From: Octopus sinensis
Lineage: Eukaryota
Assembly: GCF_006345805.1 (NCBI RefSeq)
Contig: NW_021834470.1
Coordinates: forward strand, 1,007 to 65,006
Direction of reading: 5' to 3'
DNA length: 64,000 nt
The notes under the pieces were generated by a model. The model was not told the origin of the DNA. It was given only the letters and a program-made list of their open reading frames with translations, and did not search any database. Positions within the stretch are counted from its first letter, which is position 1. Every line of letters starts with the position of its first letter. Made by a program: the position numbers and the translations under genes. This document shows positions 1 to 63,845 of the stretch, in pieces.

Positions 1-202
1 ACAAAAAGGAGTTGTCAATAATAAATTAATAAAAGATGCATAAGGTATGGCAATCTTAATTAGTAATTAATTCGTTTAAAAATATGTTTCCATGTGTTTT
101 TTTATTAGTCTATCTCATTTGTTTACAAAAGAATATGACAGATATAAACAATGTAACAAAAAAATTGACAGAATTATCAAATTACATAATAAGAGTATTT
201 AT

Positions 203-1606
203 TCCTTCTATCGAATATTGAATATTCCTTATTCTTCCGATTTTTTTGCCGAAACTCTGGACGCCCTGGAACCTATTCTAAAAGGCCCGCGGGTATCAGA
301 AACAAGGACCTTGTAATCCTTGGTTCGCCAATTGGTCACGAGGCCCTCTCACAAACGCTCATCGCCAAGGCAAGCAATCTGTCAAACATGATCGAACGGC
401 TTTCCCTCATTGATGCCCACGTCGGGTTCTTTTTTCTGCGTACTATTTCTCAACTCCGAGGCTTTTGTACACCCTAAGGAGTTCTCCTTGTTTTCGCATG
501 CCTAATCTGTTATCCGATATCGATTCTATCTTGAAGTCTGGAGCCGAGTATTGTGTAACATCCATTCGACGCTCTGTGGTGGCTTCAATCTTCCCTGCCT
601 GTAATCTTGGGGGGATTGGCCTTCGTTCGCCCGTTTATCTGGCTCTTCCTGCCTTCCTCTCGTCCCTGGCATCATCCCGTGCCCTCACTGACATCGTTCT
701 CAGAAACCTTCCCGAACGAAAAGTGTCAGTTGATCACGTGGCCGCCTCTGGACCTTTGGGATTCTGCGTATACAAAAGACCTGCCGACCCATCCGTCCAG
801 GGTCAGTGGGACTCGATCACTTGTGACACTCTCTCCTCTGTCCTGCTTCAGAGTTTCGACCAGCACAGGCTGGCCTGTCTTCGTGCGGGCTGCAGTCCGG
901 GCAGTGGGGCTGGCTTGACGACCCTTCCCCTACCGAACATCGGGACACTACTAGACGGCGACTGTCTCAGAGTCGCTATTTCTCTGCGTCTCGGTTTGAA
1001 GATCTGTGAAATTCACAAGTGCCGCTGTGGGGCCATGATCGACCTAGCACGGACTACACCCTCTTCCTGCAGACGCAGTGCTGGGCGGGCACCACGCCAC
1101 ACAGCCTTAAATGACGTCGTTTTGAGGGGTCTCAACGCTGCCGGAATTCCATCAATCCTAGAACCGGCCGGGCTTGCTAGGGGAGACGGAAAAAGACCTG
1201 ACGGTCTATCCACCTTCCCCTTTGAGTTCGGCAAGTTGCTGATTTGGGACGCGACATGTTCAGATACTTTCTCTGAACCTAATCTTCCCTTGTCAGCCGT
1301 CGCAGCCGGTTCGGTGTCCCTTAGAACAGAAAAGCTTAAGATTGCGAAATATAGAGAACTCTCGGAGCGATATCTTCGCCCCTGTTGCTGTCGAGACTTC
1401 AGGGGTCATTGGGGAAAGTCTTTGACTTTCCTCTATAAGCTCGGACGTCTGATCTCTCTGAAGAGAAATGACACACGCGAGACTGGCTGGCTCCTTCAGA
1501 GGATTTCCCTTGCCATCGTACGAGGTAACTGTTTCTCCATCTACGAAGCGGGGAAGTCCTCTAACTAACTTTATCACATTTGATAAGAAATAGCTCTGTT
1601 AAAAAA
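203..1606 (+). mobile_element. CRE-clade-like RLE non-LTR retrotransposon, 5'-truncated (RT C-terminus, zinc knuckle, RLE)
   Basis: ORF 465-1568 contains GGIGLRS, C-x-C-G...C-RRSAGR-x-PRH-x-ALND, GKRPDG, LIWDATC and LQRISLAIVRGN. There is an A-tail at ~1600 and a 12-bp target-site duplication aagagtatttat at 191-202 and 1607-1618. Confidence 0.85.
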
Positions 1607-1895
1607 AAGAGTATTTATAGTTGTCAGATAATGTTAGTCAGATAATCGCAAACAGTATTTAAGGACGGTTTTGCGGTAATTAACGGAGAGATTGAAAGTG
1701 GGAAAAATTATTGATTCACAACTTTTATGTAGATAAAAAGATTTAAAAGAAAAATTAAAGTTTAAAAAAAGCTTAAAGATTTAAAAGAAAAATAATTCAA
1801 TCTCTTCGTCATAAATAAAATTCTGTTATAAAGAATAAAAATTTAATTAAAATAGGATGAAATTCAATTTTCAAAATTTCAAAATAAGTAGATAT

Positions 1896-2509
1896 TTCGG
1901 GTCCACGATCTCTCCGAACGGTTTGCACGCCCTCTCGTGCAAGAAGAGTGCTGGCAGAATTCCTCGCCACACTCACCTCAATGACGTCGTGAAAAGGGCT
2001 CTAGAGTCGGCAGGTTTCCCCTCCACTCTAGAGCCAGTCGGTCTCTGCCGGAGTGATGGAAATCGACCTGACGGGATGACTACCTTCCCTTTCAGGGAAG
2101 GCAAGTCCCTGATTTGGGACGCAACTTGTGTTGACTCGTTCTCCGCGTCGGTGTTACTCAAGTCCATCACTAACCCGGGTTCCGCCAGTGCTCAGGCTGA
2201 GGAGGCTAAGAGGTCGAAGTATGGAAATATTTGGACTCTTACGAGTTTGTCCCCCTCGCCTTCGAAACATCTGGAATTGTCGGCAGGTCTGCGACTCGCC
2301 TTCTTGCCGACATTGCCAGGAGAATCGCCAAGAAGACAACGACCGGAGGGAGACGAGCTGGCTCTTCCAGCGAATCTCGGTCGCAGCTCCGCGGAAACTG
2401 CCACTCGATACGCAGTGCGGCGACTTTGAGCTGACCTCCAGGCTCTTTATTAATTCGTGTATAACTTATTCCCCATTTTAATTAAATATTTGTTACTTCA
2501 AAAAAAAAA
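1896..2509 (+). mobile_element. CRE-like RLE retrotransposon 3' fragment (second subfamily)
   Basis: Motifs GLHALSCKKSAGRIPRH, GNRPDG, LIWDATC and FVPLAFETSG, with poly(A) at 2499-2510. Near-TSD aagtagatat (1886-1895) versus aagtagaatat (2510-2520). Confidence 0.85.
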
Positions 2510-2999
2510 AAGTAGAATATACAGATTGAAGGAATAAACTTACAATATTACAAAATGATGAAATTTCAGTTAATTTAATCATTAAAAGAAACTACATCGC
2601 AAATATCCCTTCTGAATCCAATTAAATAAAAAATAAAGATCGACCAAATAATGTAACAAAACAACAAGGTATGTCAACCACGTTTTACACAGGCATAATT
2701 TATTAGTTTTCTATTAATAATTGGATAACAAAAAATTAAGATAATTTATTAATGCAAACAAACATTATTTTAATTAAAACACAATTCTACCTAGTAGCTT
2801 ATAAACAGTGTAAATATTAGAGCGCATATTTCTGCGATGGTTCAGATAGCTGAAATAAGGATACAAAGAACTGCGATCAAGATTGTTGAGGTGTCAAAAG
2901 TCGTGTTTAGTTATCTACACATTGTCATAACCAACTGTACTCTCAAAAATGACATTGAATGCATTCAGAAGTAAAAATCGATTTTTAAAGTATTTTATT

Positions 3000-5499: not shown

Positions 5500-7620
5500 T
5501 TAGAGTTAAGATATTCCGACCAATTGGAATCAACCATAATGTTTATATTTAGAGAAATTAAGCAAAATCAATTTGCACTAAAAATGCAATGTGGTGGGGG
5601 CTAAATTTTTGATGAAGTTTTCATTTGATCGATTTCACATTGATGTGATGTTTTAGACTCGGACGCTTAAAGTTCAAGAGCTATAAAAGTACACTCAAAG
5701 GACAACACTTCTGAAGTAGCAATAAAACACTCAAAAGGGATGGCTGAAAGAATTCAATGTCAATCTACGGATGCATATGTAAAATGTATTTTTAAAGTCG
5801 ATAATATTGTTAAATTTTGGCACTTGTGCCTGTATGAGTGTGAAATCAACGGCTTTCAGTGCGTTTTACAAAAACAGCTTGGGATTTTATGTTATGCACT
5901 GGCCTGCCAGAATTTCGAATGCTGGAATTTACTACAAATGCACAAGTAGGCCTCTAAGCCTGGATATCACTAACGCCAAATGAAAACTGGATGGCCATAC
6001 ACCCCTCGACATTAAAATTCGAACACTTAATTTTAAGCAAATTTTTAATCATTTTCAATAAAATAATTTATCTGAGCTTCTTTATTTGTATTATTCAAAC
6101 TATTTTAATATTTAAATATATATTGAAACATATAATTTTAAAAAATAAAGCAAAAAACGAGAATTTCATGACAAAAAAAACCGAACAAAATATAATTAGT
6201 AGCTTGAATGCCTTCCTTTTCTGTTGTAAACTTCCAAACTACGATTTTTCATTGAGCTAACAAGTTTTCTGATGAATTCCATTGGGATATTTTCCCAAAT
6301 TTCCGATATTTTTTTGCTTAGATCAATTTTTGTACTTGTTCTGCTTTCTGACGTATCACTTGAAAGAACGTTTTTAATGTGAGCCCAAATGTGTTCGATT
6401 GGGTTCATGTCAGGTGACTGAGGGGCCAGTCGAGCAAATTAATATTTTGAGACGACATACATTCTTTAGTTGCCTTAGATGTGTGGCAAGGCGCATTATC
6501 TTGTAGGACTATAGTCGCTCAATCCCTCAATATTTTATTCGCTGAATCTTCAAGATTATTTGCCAGAATATTAATATATTCCCCAGAGTTCATTTTTCCA
6601 TCAATAAAAACTAATTTCCCCATTCCGAAATACGAAAAACAGCCCCAAACAAGAACTTTCCTCCCTCCACCAAACTTAAAACTAGGTATTATCTTCGCAT
6701 ATCTCAACTTATTTCCTTTTTTTCTGTATTGATACATTCGTCTTGAATGGGAAAAAAGTTCAAAACTACATTTGTCGGAGAAAATAACTTTCCTCCATCC
6801 GCTGTCGGAAATTGCAAGAAATTTTTTAGATATTCCATATCTGAGAGCAATATTTTTGAACTTAGAAATGGTCGTTTCTTTACAACTCGTCCATACAAAC
6901 CTTTTGAGTTTAGAATTCTTGTTATTGTGCGTGCTGAGACTTTTTTTGTGTAATTTTTTTCCATTTCTGAAGACAAGGTAACTGCGGTTCGAAAATTATC
7001 AGTTGATAATGATAAAAGAATCCTAATTTCATTTTGACTGAACTTGGGTGGCCTTCCAGATCCAGCCTTTCTGCACGTAATTCCGGTTTTTAGATATTTT
7101 TTAACAAAGTCCCAAACAGTTGTCTTCGGTATATTTACGATATCCGAAATCATTTTATAGGAGAAATTTTGATTATATAAAGATATAATTTGTCCTTTTT
7201 TTGAAATTATTCATTTCTGTCTAATAAAAATTGTATTCTGCGAGTTGAACAAAATACCGTTCGGAATTCTTTGTCACTAGAAAACACGTTTCTGCTTTAA
7301 TTTTGAAAATTATATGTTCGAATATATATTTAATATATAAATAGTTAAAATAATACAAATAAAGAAGCTCAATAAATTATTTTATTAAAAATTTGCTAAA
7401 AATTAAGTGTTCGAATTTTAATGTCGAGGGGTGTATTTTGCGTGTAAATTTCGTTGCCCCAGCTAATCTGGCAATGAAGGATTGTTTCATGTTTGAGAGG
7501 GAATGCTTTCGTGGTCGACCAAGGATGACGCTACCAGTTGTATTACACGATGACTTTCAAAAAATGAAGAAGTGTCAAAGTCAAGTGAAAATCACATTTA
7601 TTTTTCAACCTGTTCATGCA
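5500..7620 (+). mobile_element. Decayed RTE-like LINE 3' region split by the Tc1 at 6000-7433
   Basis: Removing the Tc1 and one TA joins HWPARISNAGIYYKCTSRPLSLDITNAK*KLDGH to ILRVNFVAPANLAMKDCFMFERECFRGRPRMTLP. This parallels RWRLFGHILxMDVASPANIAME...FRGRPR in the RTE at 20960-22370. Confidence 0.7.
6000..7433 (-). mobile_element. Full-length Tc1-like DNA transposon (DD34E), 1434 bp
   Basis: TA|cacccctcgacattaaaattcgaacacttaa ... ttaagtgttcgaattttaatgtcgaggggtg|TA, with ~190-bp imperfect TIRs. Transposase pieces span 7153 to 6196 and include KFGGGRKVLVWGCFS and QDNAPCHT...SPDMNPIEHIW (34 residues D to E). Frameshifted. Confidence 0.95.
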
Positions 7621-7989: not shown

Positions 7990-8014
7990 GTATCCCATTT
8001 GTTAGTTAGTCAAG
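7990..8014 (+). other. 25-nt GT-AG spliceosomal intron in RPS3
   Basis: gtatcccatttgttagttagtcaag; removal joins DQIE to ISVERLQDKGL in frame. Confidence 0.85.
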
Positions 8015-8399
8015 ATATCTGTCGAACGTCTACAAGATAAAGGGCTTAGTGCAGTGGCACAGGTGGAGTCTATTCGTTACAAGCTGATAAGTGGGTTGGC
8101 GGTGAGGAGGGCAGCCCATTCGACTATCAAGTTGTGCATGGGGGCGGGTGCAAACGGAGTTGAGGTCAAAGTGTCCGGAAAACTTCGCGGTCAGAGGGCC
8201 AAGTGTTCTAAATTTGTGGACGGTTATTTGATTCACTCCGGGGATGCTCCCAACTACTATTTGGACAGGGTTGTGACAGGGATTCAGATGAAATCAGCTA
8301 ATGACTATTCATATTTGTAGGTGTCATCGGTATACAAGTCAAATTCTTTACTGAATTCAAATATCATTTTATTTTTTTTTTTGCTACATGCATGTTGGT

Positions 8400-10614: not shown

Positions 10615-12650
10615 GCTAAGGAGCAGGCACTGATCAACAAATGCCTCGCGAGAGCCCATGGAAACTCACTAGTGTCGATGTGGGTGGATGTGAAGAAGGC
10701 ATATGACTCGGTTGATCATGCTTACCTCGTTGAGTGTCTGCGAAGGCTTAAGTTGCCAATGTGGTGTATCAAATTTGTTGCAACTGTGATGGACAGGTGG
10801 AACGTGCATCTACATTACAACAAATGCGATATAGGCGAGGTGAAGCTAGAGAGGGGCATATTACAGGGCGACAGCATGTCTCCGCTGCTGTTCGTCCTCT
10901 GCCTAGAACCGCTGAGTAGAGTCCTCACTGCCCAATTCGAACAAATGTCGATCGAACATGAAGGAGGGTGTTTTAGCACCAACCATCTCATGTTCATAGA
11001 CGACATTAAGCTGTTCGCTTGGTCTTCAGAGATCCTCCACTCGATGGGCAAAGTCCTGAAAGGTTTCATGAAGGCCGTGGGGTTGGAGCTCAACTACAAC
11101 TGGTCGGCGACTAACACCCCTGTGTGCGGTGACCTAGTCAAAGTCTTAGAGGAACACCAAGGGTATAAGTATTGGTGTGGTTGAGATTCCAGCCTCATTA
11201 ATCACACCCGAAACGAGAAAGTGTGTAGTGGAGGGTGTGCGTAGTAGGGCGGCAAGTTATGTAAGACTCGGCTCAATGCATGGAACTTATTTCATGCATT
11301 GAACGAGTAAGCCATCTCATTGCTAAAATACTACGTTGGCCTGGTCAAATTCGAGCCGAGTGAGTACGATGAAATGGACCTTATTGTCCTAAGAGTACTC
11401 CGAGAGAATCATGTCCACGTGTTGGCAAGCAATAAAGAGAGATTATACTTGTCTCGCGGGCAGCTAGGACGTGGACTGAGTAACATCGTACACTTAAGTG
11501 AGCGAATTCTTACTAAGATGCACAACACCTTGTGGAGTGGGTCGAGTGTATCCCAAAGGAAGGCTGCCATCCTTGCTGCTGATAAAGCGCGTGGTACACA
11601 CCTAGGAACCATAAAAGGCTATGTGTCGGCTAAGTATGGTCTAGGTGCTACCCAAGTTAATGTGAAGGAGTTGATCAAACTTCAAAAGGAGGCTTTAATA
11701 AAAAGATCAACTAAAAGTCCTTCACAAGACCCTCTTTAGCACCCTGGACAACCCGCACATTACGTATCGTCGTCATCAACGTGGCTGAAATATGGGAATA
11801 ACTCAGAAGGGTTATTCTCATATTTGCAGGATAGAAACGTTTTTATTGGTCAACGGAAACAGTGTAACCACTGTAAAAGTAAGGCGATGACCGTTGACCA
11901 TTTAGCCACGAAGTGCAGGAGTATGCTTTACCATGATTACACATGGAGGCATAACGATGTGGTGAGGTCCCTCCATCTTCTGCTCTGCAATAAGTATGGC
12001 TTGAGGCGGTCCAGAAAGTTGCGAACCCATCGAGTTCAATCGGTGTGTGAGAACTCGAAGGTGTGCATTAAGGTGGATATCCCAATACGCACCTCGATTG
12101 TTGTCCAGCACAACAGACCCGACATTGTGGTCCACGATAAGGTCACCGGGGAGATTGTTATCGTGGAGGTGGGCATCACGTGCCTAGACCGTTTGCAGAC
12201 AGTGGAAGTAGAGAAAAAGAGAAAGTATGACCACCTTGCAAACGAGCTAGGGCTGATGCACCAGTGCAAAGTCCATGTCATTCCGTGTGTGATGACATGG
12301 GATGGACTGGTCACCAAATACCACAAGTGGTACTTAAGACAGTTGGATGTAGATAAGTCTCTACAGGCTTATATACAGTCAACTGTTCTTAAGAGGACTC
12401 TGGAAAGTGTCTCGTTTGATGCTCGCCGATCCAACCCTTTCCTGACGTTTAGTCAGCGAGAGGCGCTGGACTGCACCTTCTCGAAGGTCTACAGTGCCAG
12501 AAAAGAAGAGAAGGAAGGGGAGGAGGTGCGTGGAGTGCCACCTTCTGCTCACTTCGAAGGCTCTGGACTTAGTTAGTAAAATTACTTAGTTAATTAGTTT
12601 CTTTTTTGTTAGTGTTATTCTTTGCAGTTTGAGATCCGGATATTACATTT
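10615..12650 (+). mobile_element. R4/Dong-like RLE non-LTR retrotransposon, 5'-truncated
   Basis: RT motifs RGAKEQAL, DVKKAYDSVDH, GILQGDSMSPLLFVL and FIDDIKL; ERLYLSRGQLGRGL; CCHC finger CNHC...DHLATKC; RHNDVV; RLE core NRPDIVVHD...IVEVGIT...EKKRKY. Confidence 0.9.
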
Positions 12651-12739
12651 CGGAAATTGACCTGCATACATTGTTTTCGATTGATTATTATTCTATCGTA
12701 CAAAATTTAATCTATAATATAAATCTATATATGCGAGCT

Positions 12740-13830
12740 CTTAAAGTTTGATCAGATTGTTAATGAAAAGATTTTCGGAAGCAGTTTTGATTATTTCCTT
12801 TGACGAAATCGGTTGGACGCCAGGAAAACTCCCCGTCAGGTTCGGAGGGGTCGGTCTTCGCTTGCATAAAGATCTGGCGCCACACGCACATTTCTCTTCG
12901 ATTTCCAGGAGCCGACAACTTGTCCGAGAAGTTCTACTCCCCTTCAAAACTCTCTCTGGATTTGCCGACTGCCGACCTCCTGGAATTCTGGACCAACTCC
13001 AACCTTCAGATCCTTTCTGAGATGTCCTGACAGAGGGATTGGGACGAGATCTGGGCAGCACACTCGTTCTCTACGCTCCAACCGGCCTTGGACCAACACC
13101 GCCAAGCGTGCTTGCTTGCTGCAGCACACGAGCATAGCGGATACTGGCTCGACGCTTATCCGGCGTCATCGACGGGTTCCCTATTAGACAACGAAACACT
13201 GCGTATCGAGGTCGCTCTTCGGCTGAGGCTTGATGTCTGCGCCCCTCATCCCTGCCGATGCGAAGGTACGGTGGACGTGAAAGGCCTTCACCCCCTCTCC
13301 TGCCGCCGGAGCGTAGGCCACTCGCCTCGCCATAGAGCAATCAACGACGTAATCTCAAGAGCACTCAACCCTGCTGGGTTCCCCAACGTGCTAGAACCAG
13401 CCGGATTGGACAGAGGTGACGGCAAACGCCCGGACGGGATGACCACCTTCCCATTCCGGAATGGCAATTGCCTGATCTGGGACGCCACCGCTTTATTATC
13501 TACATCTTCTTCTGGTTCGGCCATCTGCATTTTCATCTTCTTTGGCGGAAGCCTGCAAAGTCGAAAAGTACAAGAATCTTGCCACTCAGCATTCCTTCGT
13601 GCCTCTGGCTTTTGAGACATCAGGCGCTTCCGGTCCGCTCACCTCATACTTCATGAGAGACCTGGTATCCTTATTGCTCGGAAGAAAATGGATGCTCGCG
13701 AGTCCTCTTGGCTGAGGCACAGGATCTCACTCGCACTCGTACGCGGCAACGAGCAAGCAATCCGTTCGGCTGGGCTCTAACTCCCGCCCCGTCGCGCTTG
13801 CAGCTCACTTCCTGACGTTGTTATTTTGAT
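12740..13830 (+). mobile_element. CRE-like RLE retrotransposon (third subfamily), 5'-truncated
   Basis: LPVRFGGVGLR, SGYWLDAYP, CxPHPCRC, GLHPLSCRRS, GKRPDG, LIWDAT, FLPLAFETSG and RISLALVRGN. Confidence 0.85.
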
Positions 13831-17889: not shown

Positions 17890-18950
17890 TTTATCATATA
17901 ATAACCATATCTAAAAGTAAAAAGATAGCTAAGCTAATTAAAGGCCTCACGAAACACCCGGCCAGCCTCGCGAATGGCGAAGCCGTTCCCTCGGATCACA
18001 GCAATCGACAGACGTTCCAGGAGCCAAGAATACTCTCTTGGATCGTGGCTAGTCCTTGAAATCCGTCGACCGAGCGAGCGAAGGAAGCGGAGTGTCTTGG
18101 GGCCGAAGATCCCGGAGGAATCCACGGCAATTGGAGTAAAGACCAGCGAGTTGGAGAGGTGGCCGTACTTGAGAATCTTTCGCTCCTCGGCCTGCCTCGA
18201 AGCGTGCCCAGGATTGGCGGCGGACAGAGCGAGATTTCCCAGCGAGAACGTGTCCGAACAGGTAGAATCCCAAATAAGGGATTTCCCCTGCTCGTATGGG
18301 AAGGTGGACATGCCGTCTGGGCGTTTGCCATCCCCTCTATCCAATCCAACAGGTTCAAGGATTGACGGGATGCCAGCTGAAGCGAGGGCTTTTTGTATGA
18401 TCGAGTTGAGTTCACTGTGACAGGGGCCACGACCGGCACTCCGCCGGCAAGCGAGGGGATGCAAACCGTACTCGTCAACAGTTCCCCCACAACGGCATTT
18501 GTAAGTCTGGCAGATTTTCAGCCCGACACGGAGGGAGATTGCAATTCTTAGGCATTCCTTGTCCACCAGGTTCCCGATGGAAGGGAGAGGGAGAGCCTTT
18601 AACCAGACACCGCTGCCTTCGCAGCTACTTGCACGGAGGCAAGCGACACGGTGTTGATTGGAGACAGGAAGGAGGCCTTCGAAAATTGCCTGACAAGAGA
18701 TTTCGTCCCATTGACGCTGTACAGATTGAGAATTGGGCAGCTTCGAACCAAACCGAGCCTCCCACCGACCACGGCAGCAGAGTAATCTTCAGACAATTTC
18801 GTTCGGGGAGGTTTCTAAGAACGATGTCTGAGAGAGTACGAAAGCGAGCGTAGTGGGCGGATAGGAATGTGGGGGAGGCAAGATCGGAATAGGATCTCAA
18901 GCCAAGGCCGCCCCAGCGCACAGGCAGGCAATACGGATCCCCGAAATCCT
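17890..18950 (-). mobile_element. CRE-like RLE retrotransposon (fourth subfamily), 5'-truncated
   Basis: Same element as the open 328-aa frame at 44841-45827. A-tail, and aatcaaaataa on both flanks as a probable TSD. Confidence 0.88.
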
Positions 18951-32430: not shown

Positions 32431-32534
32431 TAGCATGTAATATATTTTTAAGAATTAATTTATTTAAGAATAGTTAGATAAGTAAATTTAGAAATTACAT
32501 GCTAAAAATTAACACTTAAAAATTGATATAAGTA

Positions 32535-43960: not shown

Positions 43961-44811
43961 CTTCGTTTCTGATTAACTATTAATTTATTATTGTTCATGT
44001 CGTTAATAGGCTTTATAATTGATCCATTAGAAGAGAGTCTTTACATTGAGACTGTATAACGAAAGTGAAGAACTTGAATTAAATAATTTAGAAAAAATAG
44101 AATAAGAAATTGGCGAAAAATCGTCTGAACAAAGTCAGAAAGTTGTTACTATTAACGAGGGTTTAATCGCTTTAAAAATTAAAAGAGTTATATAATCAAG
44201 AAGAATTCTTTAATATAGAAAATCTTGAGTATATTGAAGACATTAGAAATACGAGTTGATACAACAATTCCAACATTAAAAAAATAAAAAAAAAACAAAA
44301 AAACAAAAAAAAAAATTCCAACAGAGTTGAACGATTTGTCACAAGATTCTTTCCGAAACATTCATTATTTTCTCGGCAACAAGTCTTTAATCATCCCAAA
44401 AGCGTCGGAAATCAAATGCTTTTTTGAGAACAAAAGGATAGTACGGGACCACAAAATTGAGAAAAAATTTTAAAAACAATACATTCTGTATATGTCCATT
44501 AGTCTGAAAAGTACGAAAACATTCCTTTCGCAATCGTCAAAATTGACATTAAAATGACTTCAACTCGATACGACGTGATACACTTCTGGAGGATTGCTTT
44601 AATCTACTACCCATCAGTGTATAGGTATTTCATAGCTCATATTGAAAACCATCCAGTCTGGTGCACGGCCAATATTACATTCCATCGTGTTCTGGATTCC
44701 AAAAGGGAACCCACTGCCTAACCCTAAACACCAATAAATGTGAGGTTATCAATTTAAAGATCAAAATAATATAAATTAATATAATTTAATTCAAAAAGAA
44801 TCAAAATAAAA

Positions 44812-47502: not shown

Positions 47503-48328
47503 TTAAGAATCCAGATCGTCAGTGATTTCTTTTCTTCGCTTGGAAGAAGAGTTTGCAACAAAATTCTCATCATTTTCCATTTCTGCGTCAAAGTAATTGT
47601 TCAACTGAGTGTCCTTACGACATGCCAGCTCCGCAAGTTGATTGGCGGCAGAGGCGTACTCCTCGTTGTCTACCTTCATCCCATGTCTGTGTTCAATAAG
47701 CATACTCTCTAGAGTCCTCTTCAGCACAACCGACTGGATGTATGTCCTCGTTCCTTCTTCAATGGATAACTTGTCCATATGACTTTTAAAGAACTTTGAG
47801 ACAACTCCATCTCATGTCAAGACAATTGGAATAATCTTCACTTTTGCTTCATAGAGAACCGACAGTTCGTTTGCAAGCAGGTCATATTTGTGAAATTTCT
47901 CCACTTCAACTTGCTTTAAACGGTCTTGCGAGGTAACTCCCACTTCGATTAAATGAATTTCTCTTTTCCTCTTGTCATAAACGAAGATTGACACAACTGA
48001 ATGTCCTTTCAATTTCCTGCTTCGTTTTATTCCATACATTCGACACAAGTGGAGATGAATACACTTTACCACTTCGTTGTGTCTTCGGAGATAATCACTG
48101 TTTAGCATCCTACCACACCGCGTAGCTAAATGGTCAACAGTCTGCCTGCTTTTTTTGCAGTGGACGCATAGTGATCCCGTGTATGCAAAGAACAAATTCC
48201 TATCTTGCAAAAGACAGTACAATGCTTCGCTTCGTGGACCATTACCACCTTCCCATACGAGCAGGGGAAATCCCTTATTTGGGATTCTACCTGTTCGGAC
48301 ACGTTCTCGCTGGGAAATCTCGCTCTGT
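47503..48328 (-). mobile_element. CRE/R4 chimeric fragment (mirror of 15435-16260)
   Basis: ORF 47812-48408 reads through the junction in this arm. Confidence 0.85.
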
Positions 48329-49929
48329 ACGCAAAATAATAGAATAACATTGAAAACGGAAATATTATAAAAATAAAACATTGATTGTACAAAATAATAG
48401 AATAACAATTAACAATTAACAACAGAAATAGAACAATTTAAAATGTTAAAATCCAATCACTTTGTAATTAGAATAGATAAAATACATTCGGGTATTTTAG
48501 TTTTTAAAGCATTCACAGTCAGACCGAGAGTATAAAGCGCGAAGATTGGACAATAAAAATCCCCGATGCTCGATTCAAATAGGAAATCGTCCAAGAACGA
48601 AAAGTTGATTGCAGATTCCACTCTCCGTACAATGTCTTCAATGGTAAAAACAAGCAGAAATGGTCTTAGGAGATCTCCTAGCACATCAGGCTGTAAAAGA
48701 ACAATTTTTTTCAAAAACAAGCGAAATTGTAAAGTAATAGAAGAGATCTACTATATGGGCAATCTTAGAGGTTCTTGGAATGCAGGTCTGAATAATTCGA
48801 TCCCTCTTGACGCTGTTAAAAGCGTTTTTAAAACCGAATCTGACAGCGACCAGAGTAAAAACATGAGTTGAGTTGCAAGCTACATGTATTTGGTCCTGCA
48901 GTTTTAGGAATTCCCATTTTCAGAGCGAATTCATCACATTGTCACTAGCCTTTTTATCAAAGGAAAATGTTTGCAGAGAAAAAAATTACTGGCCAAGGGA
49001 GTGATGTCTCCTGTCCAATTTCAACTTACCAGACTAGTAATGGCCGAAAAAAGAGAGAGATTGAGATCCTTGACGTCTTTGAGTCGAAAAGCCCTAAATG
49101 CTCTTTCTAGATGAATAGATAGGTTCAATTGTAAGAGCAAGTGGGAGTAAGTCTTTCGTCAGGTTAGCGATCAGATGGCATTAAGGGGTTCCTGGTGGTT
49201 CGCCTTCAATAAAAAGAAGGCATCAGCTAAGGGTTTAGAACAGTAACGTCTTTTATAACTGTCTGTGTTCAATGAGCATACTTTTAAGCGTGCTCTTCAG
49301 CATAACCGAGTGTATTTCCTAGTTCCTTATTTAATGGATAACTTATTAATGACTTTTAAATAACTTTTAAACAACTCCATCCCATGTCAAGACAATTTGA
49401 ATACCTTTACTTTTGGTTAATCGAGATTGATAGTTCGTTTACAAGAAGGTCTTATTTGTGAATTTTTTGCCACTTCAACTTAGTTAAACCATCTTATAAG
49501 GTAATGCCAACTTCGATTAAATTAAGTTCTTTTTTGAGCACCGCGAACGAGATTTACTGGAAAAACCAAAGTGTAATATCCGGAACTCTAACTGCAAAGA
49601 ATAGAACCAACAAAGATTCAAAAGAACGTTTCATGTAAACGCAGCGCTGGCCATATGCTCTAAAAGATCTCATCAGAAGAGCCTTAGAAGTCGCCGGAAT
49701 CCCGTCCATATTCGAGCCCACTAGGATCGACCAAGAGGCCCTTTGATGGAGGTCTGAATAATTCGATCTCTCTTAACGCTGTCAAAAGCGTTTTTGAAAT
49801 CGAGTTTAACAGCGATTTAGAAAATAATCTATATAAGACTGATTGTGTTCCTCAATTTGTCGAGTAAAAAGATGTTTGGCTTGTTACCAACCTCGGAAAC
49901 TAAAACTTATAATTTTTATAAACAGTTTA

Positions 49930-51020
49930 ATCAAAATAACAACGTCAGGAAGTGAGCTGCAAGCGCGACGGGGCAGGAGTTATAGCCCAGTCGAACGGAT
50001 TGCTTGCGCGTTCCCGCGCACGATTGCGAGCGAGATCCTCTGCCTCAGCCAAGAGGACTCGCGAGCATCCATTTTCTTCCAAGCAATGAGGATACCAAGG
50101 TCTTTCATGAAGCTTGAGGTGAGCGGACCGGAAGCGCCTGATGTCTCAAAAGCCAGAGACACGAAGGAATGCAGAGTGGCAAGATTCTTGTACTTTTCGA
50201 CTTTGGGGGCTTCCGCCAAAGAAGATGAAAATGCAGATGGCCGAACCAGAAGAAGATGTAGATAATAAAGCGGTGGCATCCCAGATCAGGCAATTGCCAT
50301 TCCGGAATAGGAAGGTGGTCATCCCATCCGGGCGTTTGCCGTCCTTTCTGTCCAATCCGGCTGGTTCTAGCACGTTGTGGAAGCTAGCAGCGTTGAGTGC
50401 TCTTGAGATTACGTCGTTGATTGCTCTATGGCGAGGCGAGCGGCCTGCGCTTCGGCGGCAGGAGAGGGGGTGAAGGCCTTTCACGTCCACCGTACCTCTA
50501 CATCGGCAGGGATGAGGGGCGCAGACATCAAGTCTCAGCCGAAGAACAACCTCGATACGCAGTGTTTCGTTGTCTAATAGGGAACTCGTCGATGACGTTG
50601 GGTAAGCGTCGAGCCAGAATCCACTATGCTCGTGTGCTGCAGCAAGCAAGCACGCTTGGCGGTGTTTGTCCAAGGCCGGTTGGAGCGTAGAGAACGAGTG
50701 TGATGCCCAGTTCTCGTCCCAATCCCTTGTCAGGACATCTCAGAAAGGATCTGAAGGTTGGAGTTTGTCCAGAATTCCAGGAGGTCGGCAGTCGGCAAAT
50801 CCAGAGAGAGTTTTGAAGGGGAGTAGAACTTCTCGGACAAGTTGTCGGCTCCTGGAAATCGAAGAGAAATGTGCGTGTGGCGCCAGATCTTTATGCAAGC
50901 GAAGACCGACCCCTCCGAACCTGACGGGGAGTTTTCCTGGCGTCCAACCGATTTCGTCAAAGGAAATAATCAAAACTGCTTCCGAAAATCTTTTCATTAA
51001 CAATCTGATCAAACTTTAAG
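49930..51020 (-). mobile_element. CRE-like element (mirror of 12740-13830)
   Basis: ORF 50146-50673; many substitutions relative to the left-arm copy. Confidence 0.85.
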
Positions 51021-51109
51021 AGCTCGCATATATAGATTTATATTATAGATTAAATTTTGTACGATAGAATAATAATCAATCGAAAACAATGTATGCAGGT
51101 CAATTTCCG

Positions 51110-53160
51110 AAATGTAATATCCGGATCTCAAACTGCAAAGAATAACACTAACAAAAAAGAAACTAATTAACTAAGTAATTTTACTAACTAAGTCCAGAGC
51201 CTTCGAAGTGAGCAGAAGGTGGCACTCCACGCACCTCCTCCCCTTCCTTCTCTTCTTTTCTGGCACTGTAGACCTTCGAGAAGGTGCAGTCCAGCGCCTC
51301 TCGCTGACTAAACGTCAGGAAAGGGTTGGATCGGCGAGCATCAAACGAGACACTTTCCAGAGTCCTCTTAAGAACAGTTGACTGTATATAAGCCTGTAGA
51401 GACTTATCTACATCCAACTGTCTTAAGTACCGCTTGTGGTATTTGGTGACCAGTCCATCCCATGTCATCACACACGGGATGACATGGACTTTGCATTGGT
51501 GCATCAGTCCTAGCTCGTTTGCAAGGAGGTCATACTTCCTCCTTTTCTCCACTTCCACTATCTGCAAACGGTCTAGCCACGTGATGCCCACCTCCACGAT
51601 AACAATCTCCCCGGTGACCTTATCGTGGACCACAATGTCGGGTCTGTTGTGCTGGACAACAATCGAGGTGCGTATGGGGGTATCCACCTTAATGCACACC
51701 CGCGAGTTCTCACACACCGATTGAACTCGATGGGTTCGCAACTTTCTGGACCGCCTCAAGCCATACTTATTGCAGAGCAAAAGATGGAGGGACCTCACCA
51801 CCTCGTTATGCCTCCATGTGTAATCATGGTAAAGCATACTCCCGCACTTCGTGGCTAAATGGTCAACGGTCATTGCCTTACTTTTACAGTGGTTACACTG
51901 TTTCCGTTGACCATTAATAAAGTTTCTATCCTGCAAATATGAGAACAACCCTTCTGATCGGGGAGAGTTATTTCCATATTTCAGCCACGTAGATGACTAC
52001 GATACGTCAATGTGCGGGTTGTCCAGGCTGCTAAAGAGAGTCTTGTGAAGGACTTTTAAGTTGATCTTTTTAATTAAAGCCTCCTTTTGAAGTTTGATCA
52101 ACTCCTTCACATTAACTTGGTAGCACCTAGACCATACTTAGCCGACACATAGCCTTTTATGGTTCCTAGGTGTGTACCACGCGCTTTATCAGCAGCAAGG
52201 ATGGCAGCCTTCCTTTGGGATACACTCGACCCACTCCACAAGGTGTTGTGCATCTTAGTAAGAATTCGCTCACTTAAGTGTACGATGTTACTCAGTCCAC
52301 GTCCTAGCTGCCCGCGAGACAAGTATAATCTCTCTTTATTGCTTGCCAACACGTGGACATGATTCTCTCGGAGTACTCTTAGGACAATAAGGTCCATTTC
52401 ATCGTACTCACTCGGCTCGAATTTGACCAGGCCAACGTAGTAGTTTAGCAATGAGATGGCTTACTCGTTCAATGCATGAAATAAGTTCCATGCATTGAGC
52501 CGAGTCTTACATAACATTGCCGCCCTACTACGCACACCCTCCACTACACACTTTCTCGTTTCGGGTGTGATTAATGAGGCTGGAATCTCAACCACACCAA
52601 GATACTTATACCCTTGGTGTTCCTCTAAGACTTTGACTAGGTCACCGCACACAGGGGTGTTAGTCGCCGACCAGTTGTAGTTGAGCTCCAACCCCACGGC
52701 CTTCATGAAACCTTTCAGGACTTTGCCCATCGAGTGGAGGATCTCTGAAGACCAAGCGAACAGCTTAATGTCGTCTATGAACATGAGATGGTGGTGCTAA
52801 AACACCCTCCTTCATGTTCGATCGACATTTGTTCGAATTGGGCAGTGAGGACTCTACTCAGCGGTTCTAGGCAGAGGACGAACAGCAGCGGAGACATGCT
52901 GTCGCCCTGTAATATGCCCCTCTCTAGCTTCACCTCGCCTATATCGCATTTGTTGTAATGTAGATGCACGTTCCACCTGTCCATCACAGTTGCAACAAAT
53001 TTGATACACCACATTGGCAACTTAAGCCTTCGCAGACACTCAACGAGGTAAGCATGATCAACCGAGTCATATGCCTTCTTCACATCCACCACATCGACAC
53101 TAGTGAGTTTCCATGGGCTCTCGCGAGGCATTGTTGATCAGTGCCTGCTCCTTAGCTCCC
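51110..53160 (-). mobile_element. R4/Dong-like element (mirror of 10615-12650)
   Basis: ORFs 51184-51948, 52107-52451, 52461-52784 and 52775-53131. Confidence 0.9.
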
Positions 53161-55424: not shown

Positions 55425-56070
55425 TAAAGAATTTGACTTGTATACCGATGACACCTACAAATATGAATAGTCATTAGCTGATTTCATCTGAATCCCTGTC
55501 ACAACCCTGTCCAAATAGTAGTTGGGAGCATCCCCGGAGTGAATCAAATAACCGTCCACAAATTTAGAACACTTGGCCCTCTGACCGCGAAGTTTTCCGG
55601 ACACTTTGACCTCAACTCCGTTTGCACCCGCCCCCATGCACAACTTGATAGTCGAATGGGCTGCCCTCCTCACCGCCAACCCACTTATCAGCTTGTAACG
55701 AATAGACTCCACCTGTGCCACTGCACTAAGCCCTTTATCTTGTAGACGTTCGACAGATATCTTGACTAACTAACAAATGGGATACTTCGATTTGATCTGT
55801 GGGGAATCCAAAGCGAGAAGATATCAGTCCTTTCATTTCTCTAATCTTCAATCCCCGATCAGCAGCGATTTGGTGCGGCGAGTCGCCATCAGAACAATTT
55901 CAATCTTCTTTGGATGATGACGAATGGAGACATCCGATAATCCCTCTTCACAAAATATTCTCATCATTGTTGACTTTAGTTCAGTTCTTAGTAGACCTTC
56001 GGACACAAACTAGTGATATTAAAATATTTGATACTCGTTTCTTCATCGAGAGATTGTCTTGTCCAATAGA
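55425..56070 (-). pseudogene. RPS3: RPS3 copy with tiny introns (mirror of 7706-8350)
   Basis: ORF 55455-55721 is identical to 8054-8320, with the same frameshift and the same non-GT third donor. Confidence 0.9.
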
Positions 56071-56341: not shown

Positions 56342-57775
56342 CACCCCTCGACATTAAAATTCGAACACTTAATTTTTAGCAAATTTTTAATAAAATAATT
56401 TATTGAGCTTCTTTATTTGTATTATTTTAACTATTTATATATTAAATATATATTCGAACATATAATTTTCAAAATTAAAGCAGAAACGTGTTTTCTAGTG
56501 ACAAAGAATTCCGAACGGTATTTTGTTCAACTCGCAGAATACAATTTTTATTAGACAGAAATGAATAATTTCAAAAAAAGGACAAATTATATCTTTATAT
56601 AATCAAAATTTCTCCTATAAAATGATTTCGGATATCGTAAATATACCGAAGACAACTGTTTGGGACTTTGTTAAAAAATATCTAAAAACCGGAATTACGT
56701 GCAGAAAGGCTGGATCTGGAAGGCCACCCAAGTTCAGTCAAAATGAAATTAGGATTCTTTTATCATTATCAACTGATAATTTTCGAACCGCAGTTACCTT
56801 GTCTTCAGAAATGGAAAAAAATTACACAAAAAAAGTCTCAGCACGCACAATAACAAGAATTCTAAACTCAAAAGGTTTGTATGGACGAGTTGTAAAGAAA
56901 CGACCATTTCTAAGTTCAAAAATATTGCTCTCAGATATGGAATATCTAAAAAATTTCTTGCAATTTCCGACAGCGGATGGAGGAAAGTTATTTTCTCCGA
57001 CAAATGTAGTTTTGAACTTTTTTCCCATTCAAGACGAATGTATCAATACAGAAAAAAAGGAAATAAGTTGAGATATGCGAAGATAATACCTAGTTTTAAG
57101 TTTGGTGGAGGGAGGAAAGTTCTTGTTTGGGGCTGTTTTTCGTATTTCGGAATGGGGAAATTAGTTTTTATTGATGGAAAAATGAACTCTGGGGAATATA
57201 TTAATATTCTGGCAAATAATCTTGAAGATTCAGCGAATAAAATATTGAGGGATTGAGCGACTATAGTCCTACAAGATAATGCGCCTTGCCACACATCTAA
57301 GGCAACTAAAGAATATATGTCGTCTCAAAATATTAATTTGCTCGACTGGCCACCTCAGTCACCTGACATGAACCCAATCGAACACATTTGGGCTCACATT
57401 AAAAACGTTCTTTCAAGTGATACGTCAGAAAGCAGAACAAGTACAAAAATTGATCTAAAGCAAAAAATATCGGAAATTTGGGAAAATATCCCAATGGAAT
57501 TCATCAGAAAACTTGTTAGCTCAATGAAAAATCGTAGTTTGGAAGTTTACAACAGAAAAGGAAGGCATTCAAGCTACTAATTAAATTTTGTTCGGTTTTT
57601 TTGTCATGAAATTCTCGTTTTTTGCTTTATTCTTTAAAATTATATGTTTCAATATATATTTAAATATTAAAATAGTTAGAATAATACAAATAAAGAAGCT
57701 CAGATAAATTATTTTATTGAAAATGATTAAAAATTTGCTTAAAATTAAGTGTTCGAATTTTAATGTCGAGGGGTG
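56342..57775 (+). mobile_element. Full-length Tc1 DD34E element (mirror of 6000-7433)
   Basis: TA-flanked TIRs cacccctcgac; ORFs 56622-57071, 57038-57256 and 57317-57580. Confidence 0.95.
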
Positions 57776-61263: not shown

Positions 61264-61878
61264 TTTTTTTTTTTGAAGTAACAAATATTTAATTAAAATG
61301 GGGAATAAGTTATACACGAATTAATAAAGAGCCTGGAGGTCAGCTCAAAGTCGCCGCACTGCGTATCGAGTGGCAGTTTCCGCGGAGCTGCGACCGAGAT
61401 TCGCTGGAAGAGCCAGCTCGTCTCCCTCCGGTCGTTGTCTTCTTGGCGATTCTCCTGGCAATGTCGGCAAGAAGGCGAGTCGCAGACCTGCCGACAATTC
61501 CAGATGTTTCGAAGGCGAGGGGGACAAACTCGTAAGAGTCCAAATATTTCCATACTTCGACCTCTTAGCCTCCTCAGCCTGAGCACTGGCGGAACCCGGG
61601 TTAGTGATGGACTTGAGTAACACCGACGCGGAGAACGAGTCAACACAAGTTGCGTCCCAAATCAGGGACTTGCCTTCCCTGAAAGGGAAGGTAGTCATCC
61701 CGTCAGGTCGATTTCCATCACTCCGGCAGAGACCGACTGGCTCTAGAGTGGAGGGGAAACCTGCCGACTCTAGAGCCCTTTTCACGACGTCATTGAGGTG
61801 AGTGTGGCGAGGAATTCTGCCAGCACTCTTCTTGCACGAGAGGGCGTGCAAACCGTTCGGAGAGATCGTGGACCCGAA
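61264..61878 (-). mobile_element. CRE-like 3' fragment (mirror of 1896-2509)
   Basis: ORF 61345-61917; poly(T) at 61263-61274. Confidence 0.85.
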
Positions 61879-62167
61879 ATATCTACTTATTTTGAAATTT
61901 TGAAAATTGAATTTCATCCTATTTTAATAAAATTTTTATTCTTTATAACAGAATTTTATTTATGACGAAGAGATTGAATTATTTTTCTTTTAAATCTTTA
62001 AGCTTTTTTTAAACTTTAATTTTTCTTTTAAATCTTTTTATCTACATAAAAGTTGTGAATCAATAATTTTTCCCACTTTCAATCTCTCCGTTAATTACCG
62101 CAAAACCGTCCTTAAATACTGTTTGCGATTATCTGACTAACATTATCTGACAACTATAAATACTCTT

Positions 62168-63575
62168 TTTTTTAACAGAGCTATTTCTTATCAAATGTGA
62201 TAAAGTTAGTTAGAGGACTTCCCCGCTTCGTAGATGGAGAAACAGTTACCTCGTACGATGGCAAGGGAAATCCTCTGAAGGAGCCAGCCAGTCTCGCGTG
62301 TGTCATTTCTCTTCAGAGAGATCAGACGTCCGAGCTTATAGAGGAAAGTCAAAGACTTTCCCCAATGACCCCTGAAGTCTCGACAGCAACAGGGGCGAAG
62401 ATATCGCTCCGAGAGTTCTCTATATTTCGCAATCTTAAGCTTTTCTGTTCTAAGGGACACCGAACCGGCTGCGACGGCTGACAAGGGAAGATTAGGTTCA
62501 GAGAAAGTATCTGAACATGTCGCGTCCCAAATCAGCAACTTGCCGAACTCAAAGGGGAAGGTGGATAGACCGTCAGGTCTTTTTCCGTCTCCCCTAGCAA
62601 GCCCGGCCGGTTCTAGGATTGATGGAATTCCGGCAGCGTTGAGACCCCTCAAAACGACGTCATTTAAGGCTGTGTGGCGTGGTGCCCGCCCAGCACTGCG
62701 TCTGCAGGAAAGAGGGTGTAGTCCGTGCTAGGTCGATCATGGCCCCACAGCGGCACTTGTGAATTTCACAGATCTTCAAACCGAGACGCAGAGAAATAGC
62801 GACTCTGAGACAGTCGCCGTCTAGTAGTGTCCCGATGTTCGGTAGGGGAAGGGTCGTCAAGCCAGCCCCACTGCCCGGACTGCAGCCCGCACGAAGACAG
62901 GCCAGCCTGTGCTGGTCGAAACTCTGAAGCAGGACAGAGGAGAGAGTGTCACAAGTGATCGAGTCCCACTGACCCTGGACGGATGGGTCGGCAGGTCTTT
63001 TGTATACGCAGAATCCCAAAGGTCCAGAGGCGGCCACGTGATCAACTGACACTTTTCGTTCGGGAAGGTTTCTGAGAACGATGTCAGTGAGGGCACGGGA
63101 TGATGCCAGGGACGAGAGGAAGGCAGGAAGAGCCAGATAAACGGGCGAACGAAGGCCAATCCCCCCAAGATTACAGGCAGGGAAGATTGAAGCCACCACA
63201 GAGCGTCGAATGGATGTTACACAATACTCGGCTCCAGACTTCAAGATAGAATCGATATCGGATAACAGATTAGGCATGCGAAAACAAGGAGAACTCCTTA
63301 GGGTGTACAAAAGCCTCGGAGTTGAGAAATAGTACGCAGAAAAAAGAACCCGACGTGGGCATCAATGAGGGAAAGCCGTTCGATCATGTTTGACAGATTG
63401 CTTGCCTTGGCGATGAGCGTTTGTGAGAGGGCCTCGTGACCAATTGGCGAACCAAGGATTACAAGGTCCTTTGTTTCTGATACCCGCGGGCCTTTTAGAA
63501 TAGGTTCCAGGGCGTCCAGAGTTTCGGCAAAAAAATCGGAAGAAATAAGGAATATTCAATATTCAGATAGAAGGA
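62168..63575 (-). mobile_element. CRE-like element (mirror of 203-1606)
   Basis: ORFs 62206-62652 and 62660-63310; TSD ataaatactctt on both sides. Confidence 0.85.
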
Positions 63576-63725
63576 ATAAATACTCTTATTATGTAATTTG
63601 ATAATTCTGTCAATTTTTTTGTTCACATTGGTTTATATCTGTCATATTCTTTTTGTAAACAAATGAGATAGACTAATAAAAAAACACATGGAAACATATT
63701 TTTAAACGAATTAATTACTAATTAA

Positions 63726-63845
63726 GATTGCCATACCTTATGCATCTTTTATTAATTTATTATTGACAACTCCTTTTGATTGCCATACATTATGCATCTT
63801 TTAATTAATTTATCATTTACAACTCCTTTTGATTGCCATACATTA
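63726..63845. repeat. ~54-bp tandem repeat, two units plus a partial third
   Basis: gattgccatac[c/a]ttatgcatctttt...caactcctttt starts at ~63726, ~63778 and ~63832; the first unit mirrors 1-56. Confidence 0.8.

Follow-up and report, generated by a model that had tools for sequence, protein, structure and literature searches.

The window, the whole stretch of 64,000 nt of Octopus sinensis DNA analysed here, is one giant palindrome, and we find that the place where its arms meet the spacer is not random: the inner boundary coincides with one end of a short LINE fragment, whose right-hand copy sits between two perfect copies of a 25-nt sequence from a Tc1-like transposon. We put at only just short of an even chance the reading that a transposon-derived inverted repeat primed a fold-back inverted duplication which is present in the DNA of the sequenced animal. 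An earlier, sequence-only reading of the window had allowed for real and artefactual origins alike; that judgement holds, and the sequence alone does not decide.

Architecture of the palindrome

Self-BLAST returns one alignment over the whole window, in which positions 33041-63777 are the reverse complement of positions 30719-4. The arms align with 98.83% identity over 30,840 columns (133 mismatches and 182 gap openings) and enclose a single-copy spacer of 2,321 nt. Their innermost 37 nt are 100% complementary, and a palindrome by chance is not a concern. The giant palindrome that had been described, with arms of about 30.7 kb around a 2.3-kb spacer, is confirmed, and the coordinates given for it are exact:

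1-30719, minus strand: left arm, mirror of the right arm and the derived copy, truncated by the window edge (self-BLAST)
30720-33040, plus strand: spacer (loop), with the LINE 5' end and endonuclease N-terminus, the body of Tc1-like element A and the 5' part of Tc1-like element B
33041-63780, plus strand: right arm, the native copy, which with the spacer completes the nest of Tc1 A, Tc1 B and LINE; ordinary sequence continues to 64000

The symmetry centre, at 31,880, lies about 120 nt from the centre of the window. Because the left arm runs to the window edge, reaching its first bases within a 53-nt tandem repeat, the outer arm ends are outside view; the edge cuts the palindrome, and the arms are at least 30.7 kb each. 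Fold-back inverted duplications consist of inverted copies around a non-duplicated spacer of about 0.8-70 kb (PMC3907307), as found here (copies at 4-30719 and 33041-63777, spacer of 2,321 nt), and in its anatomy the window resembles this ordinary, well-known kind of rearrangement.

In database searches, close relatives came from Octopus sinensis only, with 90% amino-acid and 93-97% nucleotide identity to several different transposons of the window. This transposon-rich DNA looks like octopus and not like a parasite, and the earlier attribution to a parasite genome is not supported; should the record nevertheless belong to a parasite of cephalopods, the stretch could be DNA of its host. Coding content in the arms comprises transposase, reverse transcriptase and endonuclease ORFs and a C-terminal pseudogene fragment of RPS3, with no gene; Rfam families and tRNAs are absent from the window. 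What had been called a hAT element gives no hAT signal, and the remnant that follows the LINE piece on its right yields only a weak pogo-type DDE_1 match. Hairpins from hAT excision were considered as a cause of the palindrome and rejected, as no hAT is detectable.

Nested transposons and the native arm

A nest of mobile elements distinguishes the two arms. In it, the endonuclease gene of a LINE is interrupted by Tc1-like element A, and A in turn holds a second Tc1-like element, B:

30788-31097, plus strand: LINE apurinic-type endonuclease, N-terminal part (ORF and profile match)
31096-34401, plus strand: Tc1-like element A, IR/DR type (inverted repeats, and TA duplications at its ends)
32535-34341, plus strand: Tc1-like element B, within the right inverted repeat of A, with TA duplications; split by the LINE fragment and the 25-nt duplication
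34404-34690, plus strand: LINE endonuclease, middle part with the GDLN motif (ORF, restored frame and profile match)

Element A has outer repeats at 31094-31139 and 34358-34403, inner repeats at 31266-31298 and 32366-32429, and TA duplications at 31094-95 and 34402-03; the terminal repeats of B lie at about 32535-32561 and 34315-34341. When A (31096-34401) is excised in silico the endonuclease frame is restored, with ...GGMY joined to SKYL...GDLN, and an Exo_endo_phos Pfam match spans the joined LINE pieces, while a protein homology search with these joined pieces gave no matches. Further Pfam matches are to HTH_Tnp_Tc3_2 within 31374-31892 (spacer, Tc1 A) and to DDE_3 in the left-arm mirror ORF of Tc1 B (29781-30308).

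The nest is whole only across the spacer and right arm. Of these elements the left arm has no more than three pieces: from Tc1 B the 3' part (29420-30393), from Tc1 A the right end (29359-29417) and from the LINE endonuclease the middle (about 29073-29358); coordinate mapping finds no partners for the opposite ends of these halves. Therefore the left arm is the copy: a complete nest on one side and unpaired halves on the other are what is left when a native copy persists and its duplicate has taken the place of the original flank. On both points the sequence-only reading had it right, that the nested ends pair and excision restores the endonuclease frame (borne out by the removal of A and by its TA duplications) and that the left arm is derived. 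The nesting also shows the order of events: LINE insertion, then Tc1 A into the endonuclease gene, then Tc1 B into A and finally the LINE fragment inside B.

The inner arm boundary

The innermost roughly 325 nt of both arms are the LINE fragment, which we name F. Its two copies form an inverted repeat at both spacer edges, around the 2.3-kb loop:

30394-30719, minus strand: left copy of F, adjoining the LINE 5' end at 30720
33019-33043, plus strand: first copy of the 25-nt Tc1 B sequence, at the end of the spacer (repeat comparison)
33044-33367, plus strand: right copy of F, LINE endonuclease C-terminus (GSDH motif) and linker, inside Tc1 B; ORF 33131-33379
33368-33392, plus strand: second, perfect copy of the 25-nt Tc1 B sequence, directly after F

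With the mirror of the second copy (30369-30393, 2 differences), the 25-nt sequence has 3 matches in the window against 0 expected. There is a 3-nt overlap of AAA at 33041-33043 (AAA/TTT), and no complementarity is seen across 30719/30720. Arm boundary and F edge agree within 3 nt; a fold-back point chosen at random would fall at this place about 0.1% of the time, and the two features are therefore linked. Neither the F edge nor the 25-nt duplication appeared in the sequence-only reading, and both alter the mechanistic picture; position 30394, treated there as a junction of its own, is the mirror of 33367 and constitutes no independent new junction.

F is collinear with the other two LINE pieces on the profiles Exo_endo_phos (5-204 of 225) and Exo_endo_phos_2 (17-115 of 117). 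F is necessarily younger than Tc1 B but shares the collinear order of the older LINE pieces, and a source close by is therefore to be expected. It has a single further copy, on the left; this copy adjoins the LINE 5' end, and we infer it to be native. An ordinary retrotransposed LINE copy was rejected as the identity of F, which lacks both a tail and the 3' end of a LINE and stops within the linker that joins endonuclease and reverse transcriptase. We also weighed twin priming, the 5' inversion of a single LINE insertion, as a reason for its inverted placement beside the LINE 5' end. The end of the middle LINE piece (...CACCACGCA) and the start of F (CACTATGCA) share 9 similar overlapping bases, compatible with twin priming; F aligns locally to 34400-35000, however, no better than shuffled sequence does. 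Exact look-ups of four ORFs of the window, two of them crossing 30719/30720 and 33043/33044, found none on record.

Differences between the arms

The arms differ almost only by 1-nt indels, as is typical of noisy long-read consensus (159 of the 182 indels are of 1 nt, and 132 of these adjoin the same base), and the differences are mostly sequencing noise. Toward the centre indels become denser: their rate is 2.4 per kb over 0-18 kb and 10.8 per kb over 18-30 kb (Spearman rho 0.69, p=3e-5). GC and homopolymer density do not explain this gradient, and near the centre frame-breaking indels occur in both arms. Nanopore reads of physically palindromic molecules yield such centre-rising errors (PMC7229812); if this was the sequencing platform, the gradient would fit reads of physically palindromic molecules and favour fold-back in the animal.

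Substitutions are concentrated in one region:

11731-13785: two divergent patches (11731-12328 and 12994-13785) with about 5% substitutions; right-arm mirror at about 50000-52050

Both patches (0.6-0.8 kb, Ts:Tv 1.6, with CpG accounting for 20 of 74 sites) fall within ORFs of retroelements, and these ORFs are intact in each arm. Outside them there are 23 isolated substitutions in 29.3 kb (about 0.08%), with Ts:Tv of about 1. The sequence-only reading had offered the joining of two haplotypes, in which the assembler would place two versions of one locus head-to-head. Arms that are not perfectly identical and patches 5% apart would suit this, but differences at the level of heterozygosity should run the full length, and the 0.08% seen outside the patches compares with 1.22% heterozygosity in Octopus vulgaris (PMC10700109); moreover, the shared F edge, the 25-nt duplication and the single-copy spacer would be unaccounted for. 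We regard it as very improbable. An older palindrome maintained by gene conversion between its arms, of the ampliconic type of sex chromosomes, would explain the rarity of isolated substitutions, and the two patches resemble ectopic conversion from other retroelement copies. The arms carry no genes, only transposon ORFs and the RPS3 fragment, however, and all 25 of 25 nt in the duplication at the inner boundary are still unworn, making this origin improbable as well.

A technical fold-back deserves more weight, and we consider it a real possibility at somewhat below an even chance. The genome would then hold just the spacer and right arm, possibly with the small inverted repeat of F, and the 30-kb left arm would derive from fold-back or template-switched molecules (amplification, library repair) or from an assembler that traversed one unitig twice in opposite orientations, routes that share this one estimate. 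Compatible with it are the character of the record, a noisy long-read consensus, and the closeness of palindrome centre and window centre, such as a hairpin contig making up the entire record would give. On the other hand, amplification is unusual for a large animal, and a 325-nt repeat is too short to mislead long-read overlap assembly. The arms are also of similar quality, in ORF content (14,433 vs 14,783 aa), in one-sided indels (84:98) and in a low-powered ORF-preservation test of which arm carries indel errors (frame-preserving alleles 10:10), which is unexpected if one arm stems from one or a few chimeric reads. An outgroup test, applicable only where O. sinensis transposon copies serve as outgroup, disagrees: it assigns about 12 of 14 polarised differences to the left arm, with low power and with 10 events within one 1-kb stretch. 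This skew, hinting at weaker read support for the left arm, speaks for a technical origin and against fold-back in the animal.

A possible two-step origin

If the fold-back took place in the animal, two repair events would account for the observed structure. In the first, a break in Tc1 B would be repaired by snap-back synthesis: the 3' end ...CCGTAAA would turn back over 2.3 kb and pair with TTT (30717-30719) on the same strand, 325 nt of the local LINE would be copied, and Tc1 B would be rejoined 25 nt upstream of the break. The outcome would be F within B, a 25-nt duplication and a 3-nt overlap, and with them the inverted repeat of about 325 nt. In the second, a later break to the left of this repeat would be followed by resection, the copies of F would anneal within one strand into a hairpin whose loop is the spacer, and fill-in and replication would produce a mirror of everything rightward, displacing the native left flank and leaving no new junction (30394 being the image of 33367). 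An inverted repeat of about 325 nt with a 2.3-kb loop has the form and layout from which fold-back inverted duplications are known to arise.

The arms are nearly identical, and a fold-back in the animal would therefore need to be very recent, which counts against it. Known read artefacts fit poorly, as nanopore turns occur within 200 bp and an adapter remnant is absent, which favours fold-back in the animal; against it, a replicated hairpin end leads to a dicentric or end-deleted chromosome that is rarely transmissible unless resolved further. The fuller reading, in which an octopus chromosome carries a palindrome of at least 61 kb that is both real and very young, possibly isochromosome-like or end-deleted, with a two-step birth legible base by base, strikes us as plausible but somewhat less than evenly probable.

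Were it real, this would be a fold-back inverted duplication primed by an inverted repeat in a non-model animal with the precursor lesion preserved, a natural two-step record of how large palindromes form in transposon-rich genomes. Nested transposons in the repeat-rich octopus genome could then seed large palindromes, and the chromosome of the reference individual would carry a duplicated and probably a deleted segment. Were it technical, a false duplication of at least 30 kb would have to be removed from the assembly, and fold-back artefacts could carry a kb-scale genomic spacer and so escape filters for spacer-less palindromic reads.

Comparison with known systems

Primate sex chromosomes carry the ampliconic palindromes P1-P8. 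Such palindromes (mentioned in PMC6218980) share long, near-identical arms and a unique spacer with the window, but they hold multi-copy protein-coding genes and are conserved across species, whereas the arms here hold transposon ORFs and the RPS3 fragment only.

Fold-back artefact reads from nanopore and PacBio instruments are near-perfect palindromes, symmetric about their midpoint, as is the window; they account for 0.55-0.6% of genomic reads on nanopore and may leave assembly graphs tangled, which favours a technical origin, but they turn within about 200 bp (PMC12338684). The turn here is 2,321 nt of coherent genomic sequence, continuous with one arm. Template-complement or missed-adapter reads likewise lack a genomic spacer, and blastn-short with SMRTbell and ONT adapter sequences gave chance matches of 8-13 nt only, none at the junctions. 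Multiple displacement amplification (MDA), also in line with a technical origin, yields mainly inverted chimeras whose joined points lie less than 10 kb apart and share 2-21 nt of complementarity (PMC1855051), and these damage long-read assemblies (PMC6218980). The join distance here is 2.3 kb; of the two junctions, one shows 3 nt of complementarity and the second has 0 nt visible. MDA chimeras differ in needing amplified DNA, of which there is no indication here, and in being usually read-sized, unlike arms of at least 30 kb and similar quality.

In yeast, single-stranded DNA folds back at Alu-sized inverted repeats separated by as much as 30 kb (2023, PMC10164571). Such experimental systems, from this work and from Tanaka et al. 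(cited in PMC3907307), resemble the proposed origin in that an Alu-sized inverted repeat with a kb-scale spacer anneals within one strand to form a hairpin, whose replication gives a giant palindrome without a new junction; they differ in that selection is applied and dicentric products rearrange further, a follow-up structure that is not found within the window.

In overall form the window resembles human constitutional fold-back duplications, a likeness that favours fold-back in the animal; these have spacers of 766-70,466 bp (median 3,428) and junction microhomology of 2-8 bp (Hermetz et al. 2014, PMC3907307). Common to both are inverted copies, a kb-scale single-copy spacer (here 2,321 nt) and the replacement of one native flank. 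In 3 of the 21 human cases there is inverted LINE/Alu homology of about 300 bp at the spacer edges (PMC3907307), to which the 325-nt LINE fragment here, with 3-nt microhomology at one junction, would correspond if its left copy predates the event. Copy number, terminal deletion and junctions were verified in patient DNA for the human cases. Here, unlike in the human cases, the inverted repeat was apparently made at the locus itself by an earlier repair event.

Geometry of the palindrome and its nested centre

When the window is compared with itself, 33041-63777 pairs as the reverse complement of 30719-4 in a single alignment (30,840 columns, 98.83% identity, 133 mismatches and 182 gap openings), leaving an unpaired centre of 2,321 nt at 30720-33040. 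The coordinates at which the sequence-only reading had placed a palindrome of about 64 kb are thus exact. In each arm, the 37 nt nearest the centre pair without a mismatch. At the other end, the left arm already includes the window's opening bases, which lie within a 53-nt tandem repeat (mirror 63726-63845), so that the arms are at least 30.7 kb long and their outer ends fall outside our view. The centre of the palindrome (31,880) lies about 120 nt from that of the window (32,000), a proximity with a chance below 1% unless the record is a ~64-kb end-to-end hairpin contig.

At the centre, a LINE endonuclease gene is interrupted by two nested Tc1-like elements, Tc1 A and Tc1 B. Innermost in both arms is a 325-nt LINE piece, here called fragment F.

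Features at the centre of the palindrome
30394-30719: mirror copy of fragment F in the left arm, directly abutting the LINE 5' end at 30720
30720-31097 (+): LINE 5' end with the N-terminal third of the endonuclease
31096-34401 (+): Tc1 A, IR/DR-type; outer repeats 31094-31139 and 34358-34403, inner repeats 31266-31298 and 32366-32429, TA duplications
32535-34341 (+): Tc1 B, in the right inverted repeat of Tc1 A; own terminal repeats, TA duplications
33044-33367 (+): right copy of fragment F; C-terminal end of a LINE endonuclease (GSDH motif) and the following linker
34404-34690 (+): middle of the LINE endonuclease, same gene as 30720-31097

Excising Tc1 A in silico restores a frame that runs from ...IGGMY directly into SKYLSKYPSLIKNFFADKHTSLSILLGDLN, and the Pfam profile Exo_endo_phos aligns unbroken across this join, which bears out the earlier argument from nesting. 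Because only the right-hand halves of Tc1 B and Tc1 A are found in the left arm, it is the left arm that is the copy.

Fragment F and the arm boundary

The structural reasoning of the sequence-only reading largely holds, but what matters most about the inner boundary escaped it: the right arm begins not with Tc1 B but with the 325 nt of fragment F. F is embedded in Tc1 B between perfect 25-nt direct repeats of Tc1 B sequence (33019-43 and 33368-92). This 25-mer is matched three times in the window, where no match is expected. Apart from a 3-nt AAA overlap, the arm boundary (33041) coincides with the left edge of F. If F is set behind the two older LINE pieces, all three are collinear on both Exo_endo_phos (5-204 of 225) and Exo_endo_phos_2 (17-115 of 117), and for this reason F looks like the absent end of that LINE or another of its family. 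The order of events is fixed: first the LINE, then Tc1 A, then Tc1 B, then F inside B. Since F is the youngest in this order, the copy in Tc1 B is secondary, and its source is expected nearby. Both inner junctions share the same end of F, the junction at 30394 being the exact mirror of that at 33367.

A random fold-back point would fall within 3 nt of the edge of F about once in a thousand times. This coincidence points to a two-step history of the palindrome, both steps of which we infer. In the first, a break in Tc1 B would have been repaired through snap-back synthesis: the 3' end ...CCGTAAA would pair with the TTT at 30717-19, on the same strand and 2.3 kb upstream, 325 nt would be copied leftwards to give F, and Tc1 B would then be rejoined 25 nt before the break. 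Such a repair would account, with no coincidence needed, for how F is oriented, for the 3-nt overlap and the 25-nt duplication, and for why the other copy of F adjoins 30720; it would also leave an inverted repeat of about 325 nt flanking a 2.3-kb loop. In the second step, once a break lying further to the left had been resected, both copies of F would anneal within one strand, and the resulting hairpin would be filled in and replicated; everything to the right would be mirrored and the native left flank lost, with no new junction created.

Differences between the arms

Single-nucleotide indels make up 159 of the 182 indels between the arms; 132 of these 159 adjoin an identical base, and the overall split is even (extra base in the left arm 84, in the right arm 98). 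Substitutions cluster in two patches, 11731-12328 and 12994-13785 (mirror about 50000-52050), with 74 differences in 1,390 nt (5.3%), a Ts:Tv of 1.6, 20 sites at CpG and almost no indels; both lie within retroelement ORFs that are open in both arms. Outside the patches we find only 23 lone substitutions in 29.3 kb (0.08%, Ts:Tv about 1), and the arms are therefore essentially identical. The bulk of the 1.2% difference between them is consensus noise of an error-prone long-read assembly, and the patches look like another copy of a multi-copy retroelement written into one arm, via ectopic conversion or mis-polishing. That these arms belong to an older palindrome kept by gene conversion seems improbable. 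A mis-join of two haplotypes is very improbable: octopus heterozygosity would make the arms differ far more than they do.

Indel differences climb towards the centre, from 2.4 per kb (outer 18 kb) to 10.8 per kb (inner 12 kb) and 17-21 per kb beside the centre (Spearman rho 0.69, p = 3e-5); neither GC content nor homopolymer density, both checked, accounts for this trend.

Whether errors are concentrated in one arm is a question on which the evidence is mixed, and that for an asymmetry is weak. Summed ORF content is equal between the arms, and frame-preserving indel alleles in long reading frames divide 10:10. An outgroup comparison with Octopus sinensis transposon copies, where usable, places about 12 of 14 differences on the left arm, 10 of them confined to a single 1-kb stretch at 17.9-18.9 kb. 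Across this GC-rich kilobase (17923-18928 versus 44834-45838) the 8 substitutions and 5 indel columns between the arms are without exception left-arm-specific; the right arm matches an O. sinensis copy of the element, and the left-arm changes resemble C/G-run errors. Separately, the 25-nt Tc1 B sequence is the same at 33019-33043 and 33368-33392, and its mirror at 30369-30393 reads GTC instead of GCT, which, with the spacer copy as witness, is a left-arm error at the mirrored junction.

Sequence content and source organism

The window is a transposon mosaic, in which no structural RNA or tRNA was found.

Features of the mosaic
Window: three Tc1-type elements; several RT pieces; LINE endonuclease, apurinic-type; repeated ORFs with a zinc knuckle and a restriction-like endonuclease tail
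39739-40197: pogo-type HTH domain (HTH_Tnp_Tc5 ORF)
43335-43951 (+), 44790-45824 (+), 47815-48408 (-), 50149-50739 (-), 51187-51996 (-), 61348-61923 (-), 62209-63361 (-): recurrent retroelement ORFs with no Pfam match
55458-55769 (-), mirror 8006-8317 (+): ribosomal protein S3 C-terminal domain, 104-codon open frame (Pfam Ribosomal_S3_C, E=3e-14)
56565-57577 (+), mirror about 6200-7210: third Tc1-type transposase, HTH and DDE_3, few frame breaks

Diverged and isolated amid transposons, the S3 frame is probably a processed pseudogene fragment. A satellite-like array at 37314-38017 (mirror 25728-26438) has about 9 copies of a 75-nt unit, 78-80% alike, with a 225-nt higher-order period. The recurrent retroelement ORFs with no Pfam match are of two kinds. 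The first, downstream of RT pieces, carries an RPD...E..K endonuclease-like tail after a Cys/His knuckle and resembles Dong-R4/R2-type LINEs; the second contains the motif GLHPLSCRRSAGR...RPDG...IWD and shares 90% identity with O. sinensis LOC115227578.

In the databases, just two proteins are closely related, both from Octopus sinensis (90% and 59% identity), and five different transposon segments of the window recur on their contigs (87-97% nucleotide identity). The mix of elements fits the repeat annotation of Octopus vulgaris, where recently active insertions of DNA transposons are most often Tc1-Mariner and the active LINE families include RTE and Dong-R4 (PMC13282606). The earlier attribution to a parasite genome is unsupported. 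In a Dicyema japonicum project with specimens from O. sinensis, host cells were incompletely removed (PMC6736024); were the record labelled a cephalopod parasite, the window could possibly be host DNA. The proposed hAT element likewise finds no support, a very weak DDE_1 remnant lying at its expected site (about 35950-36330).

Origin of the palindrome

The palindrome may be real, but its geometry could also form technically, which is almost as probable. In favour of an artefact, the duplication is without independent support, a chromosome with a replicated hairpin end would be unstable, the arms are practically identical, the outgroup comparison leans against the left arm, and the nearness of the two centres (~120 nt) suggests a hairpin contig. 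A symmetric ending is, however, also expected of a real palindrome with arms longer than the reads. Nanopore fold-back reads, 0.55-0.6% of genomic reads, turn within about 200 bp (PMC12338684), whereas the turn here contains 2.3 kb of coherent genomic sequence and so lies outside the definition of a spacer-less fold-back read artefact; the absence of any adapter remnant also argues against the common artefacts. In amplification chimeras the gaps are kb-scale and complementarity spans 2-21 nt (PMC1855051; PMC6218980), but these chimeras are the size of reads, and amplification of DNA from so large an animal is not expected. A repeat of only 325 nt should not mislead long-read assembly either. 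Finally, both arms are noisy near the centre, as from physically palindromic molecules if the data are nanopore; nanopore reads of such molecules yield noise of this kind (PMC7229812), and one octopus reference was built from R9.4.1 nanopore reads with HyPo polishing (PMC10700109). We give a fold-back present in the animal's DNA a nearly even chance.

Comparison with known palindromes

Inverted duplication from fold-back, primed by an inverted repeat, is a known kind of structure. Sequenced human fold-back duplications have spacers of 766-70,466 bp (median 3,428) and junction microhomology of 2-8 bp, and in 3 of 21 the spacer edges carry inverted LINE/Alu homology of ~300 bp (PMC3907307). The geometry inferred for our palindrome is the same as theirs, and the same as that of inverted-repeat-driven fold-back in yeast (PMC10164571). 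Ampliconic palindromes, in contrast, bear genes, and because none is present here the structure is not of that type. Particular to our palindrome is its priming repeat, which an earlier repair within the nested transposons seems to have generated in place, with every step still readable.
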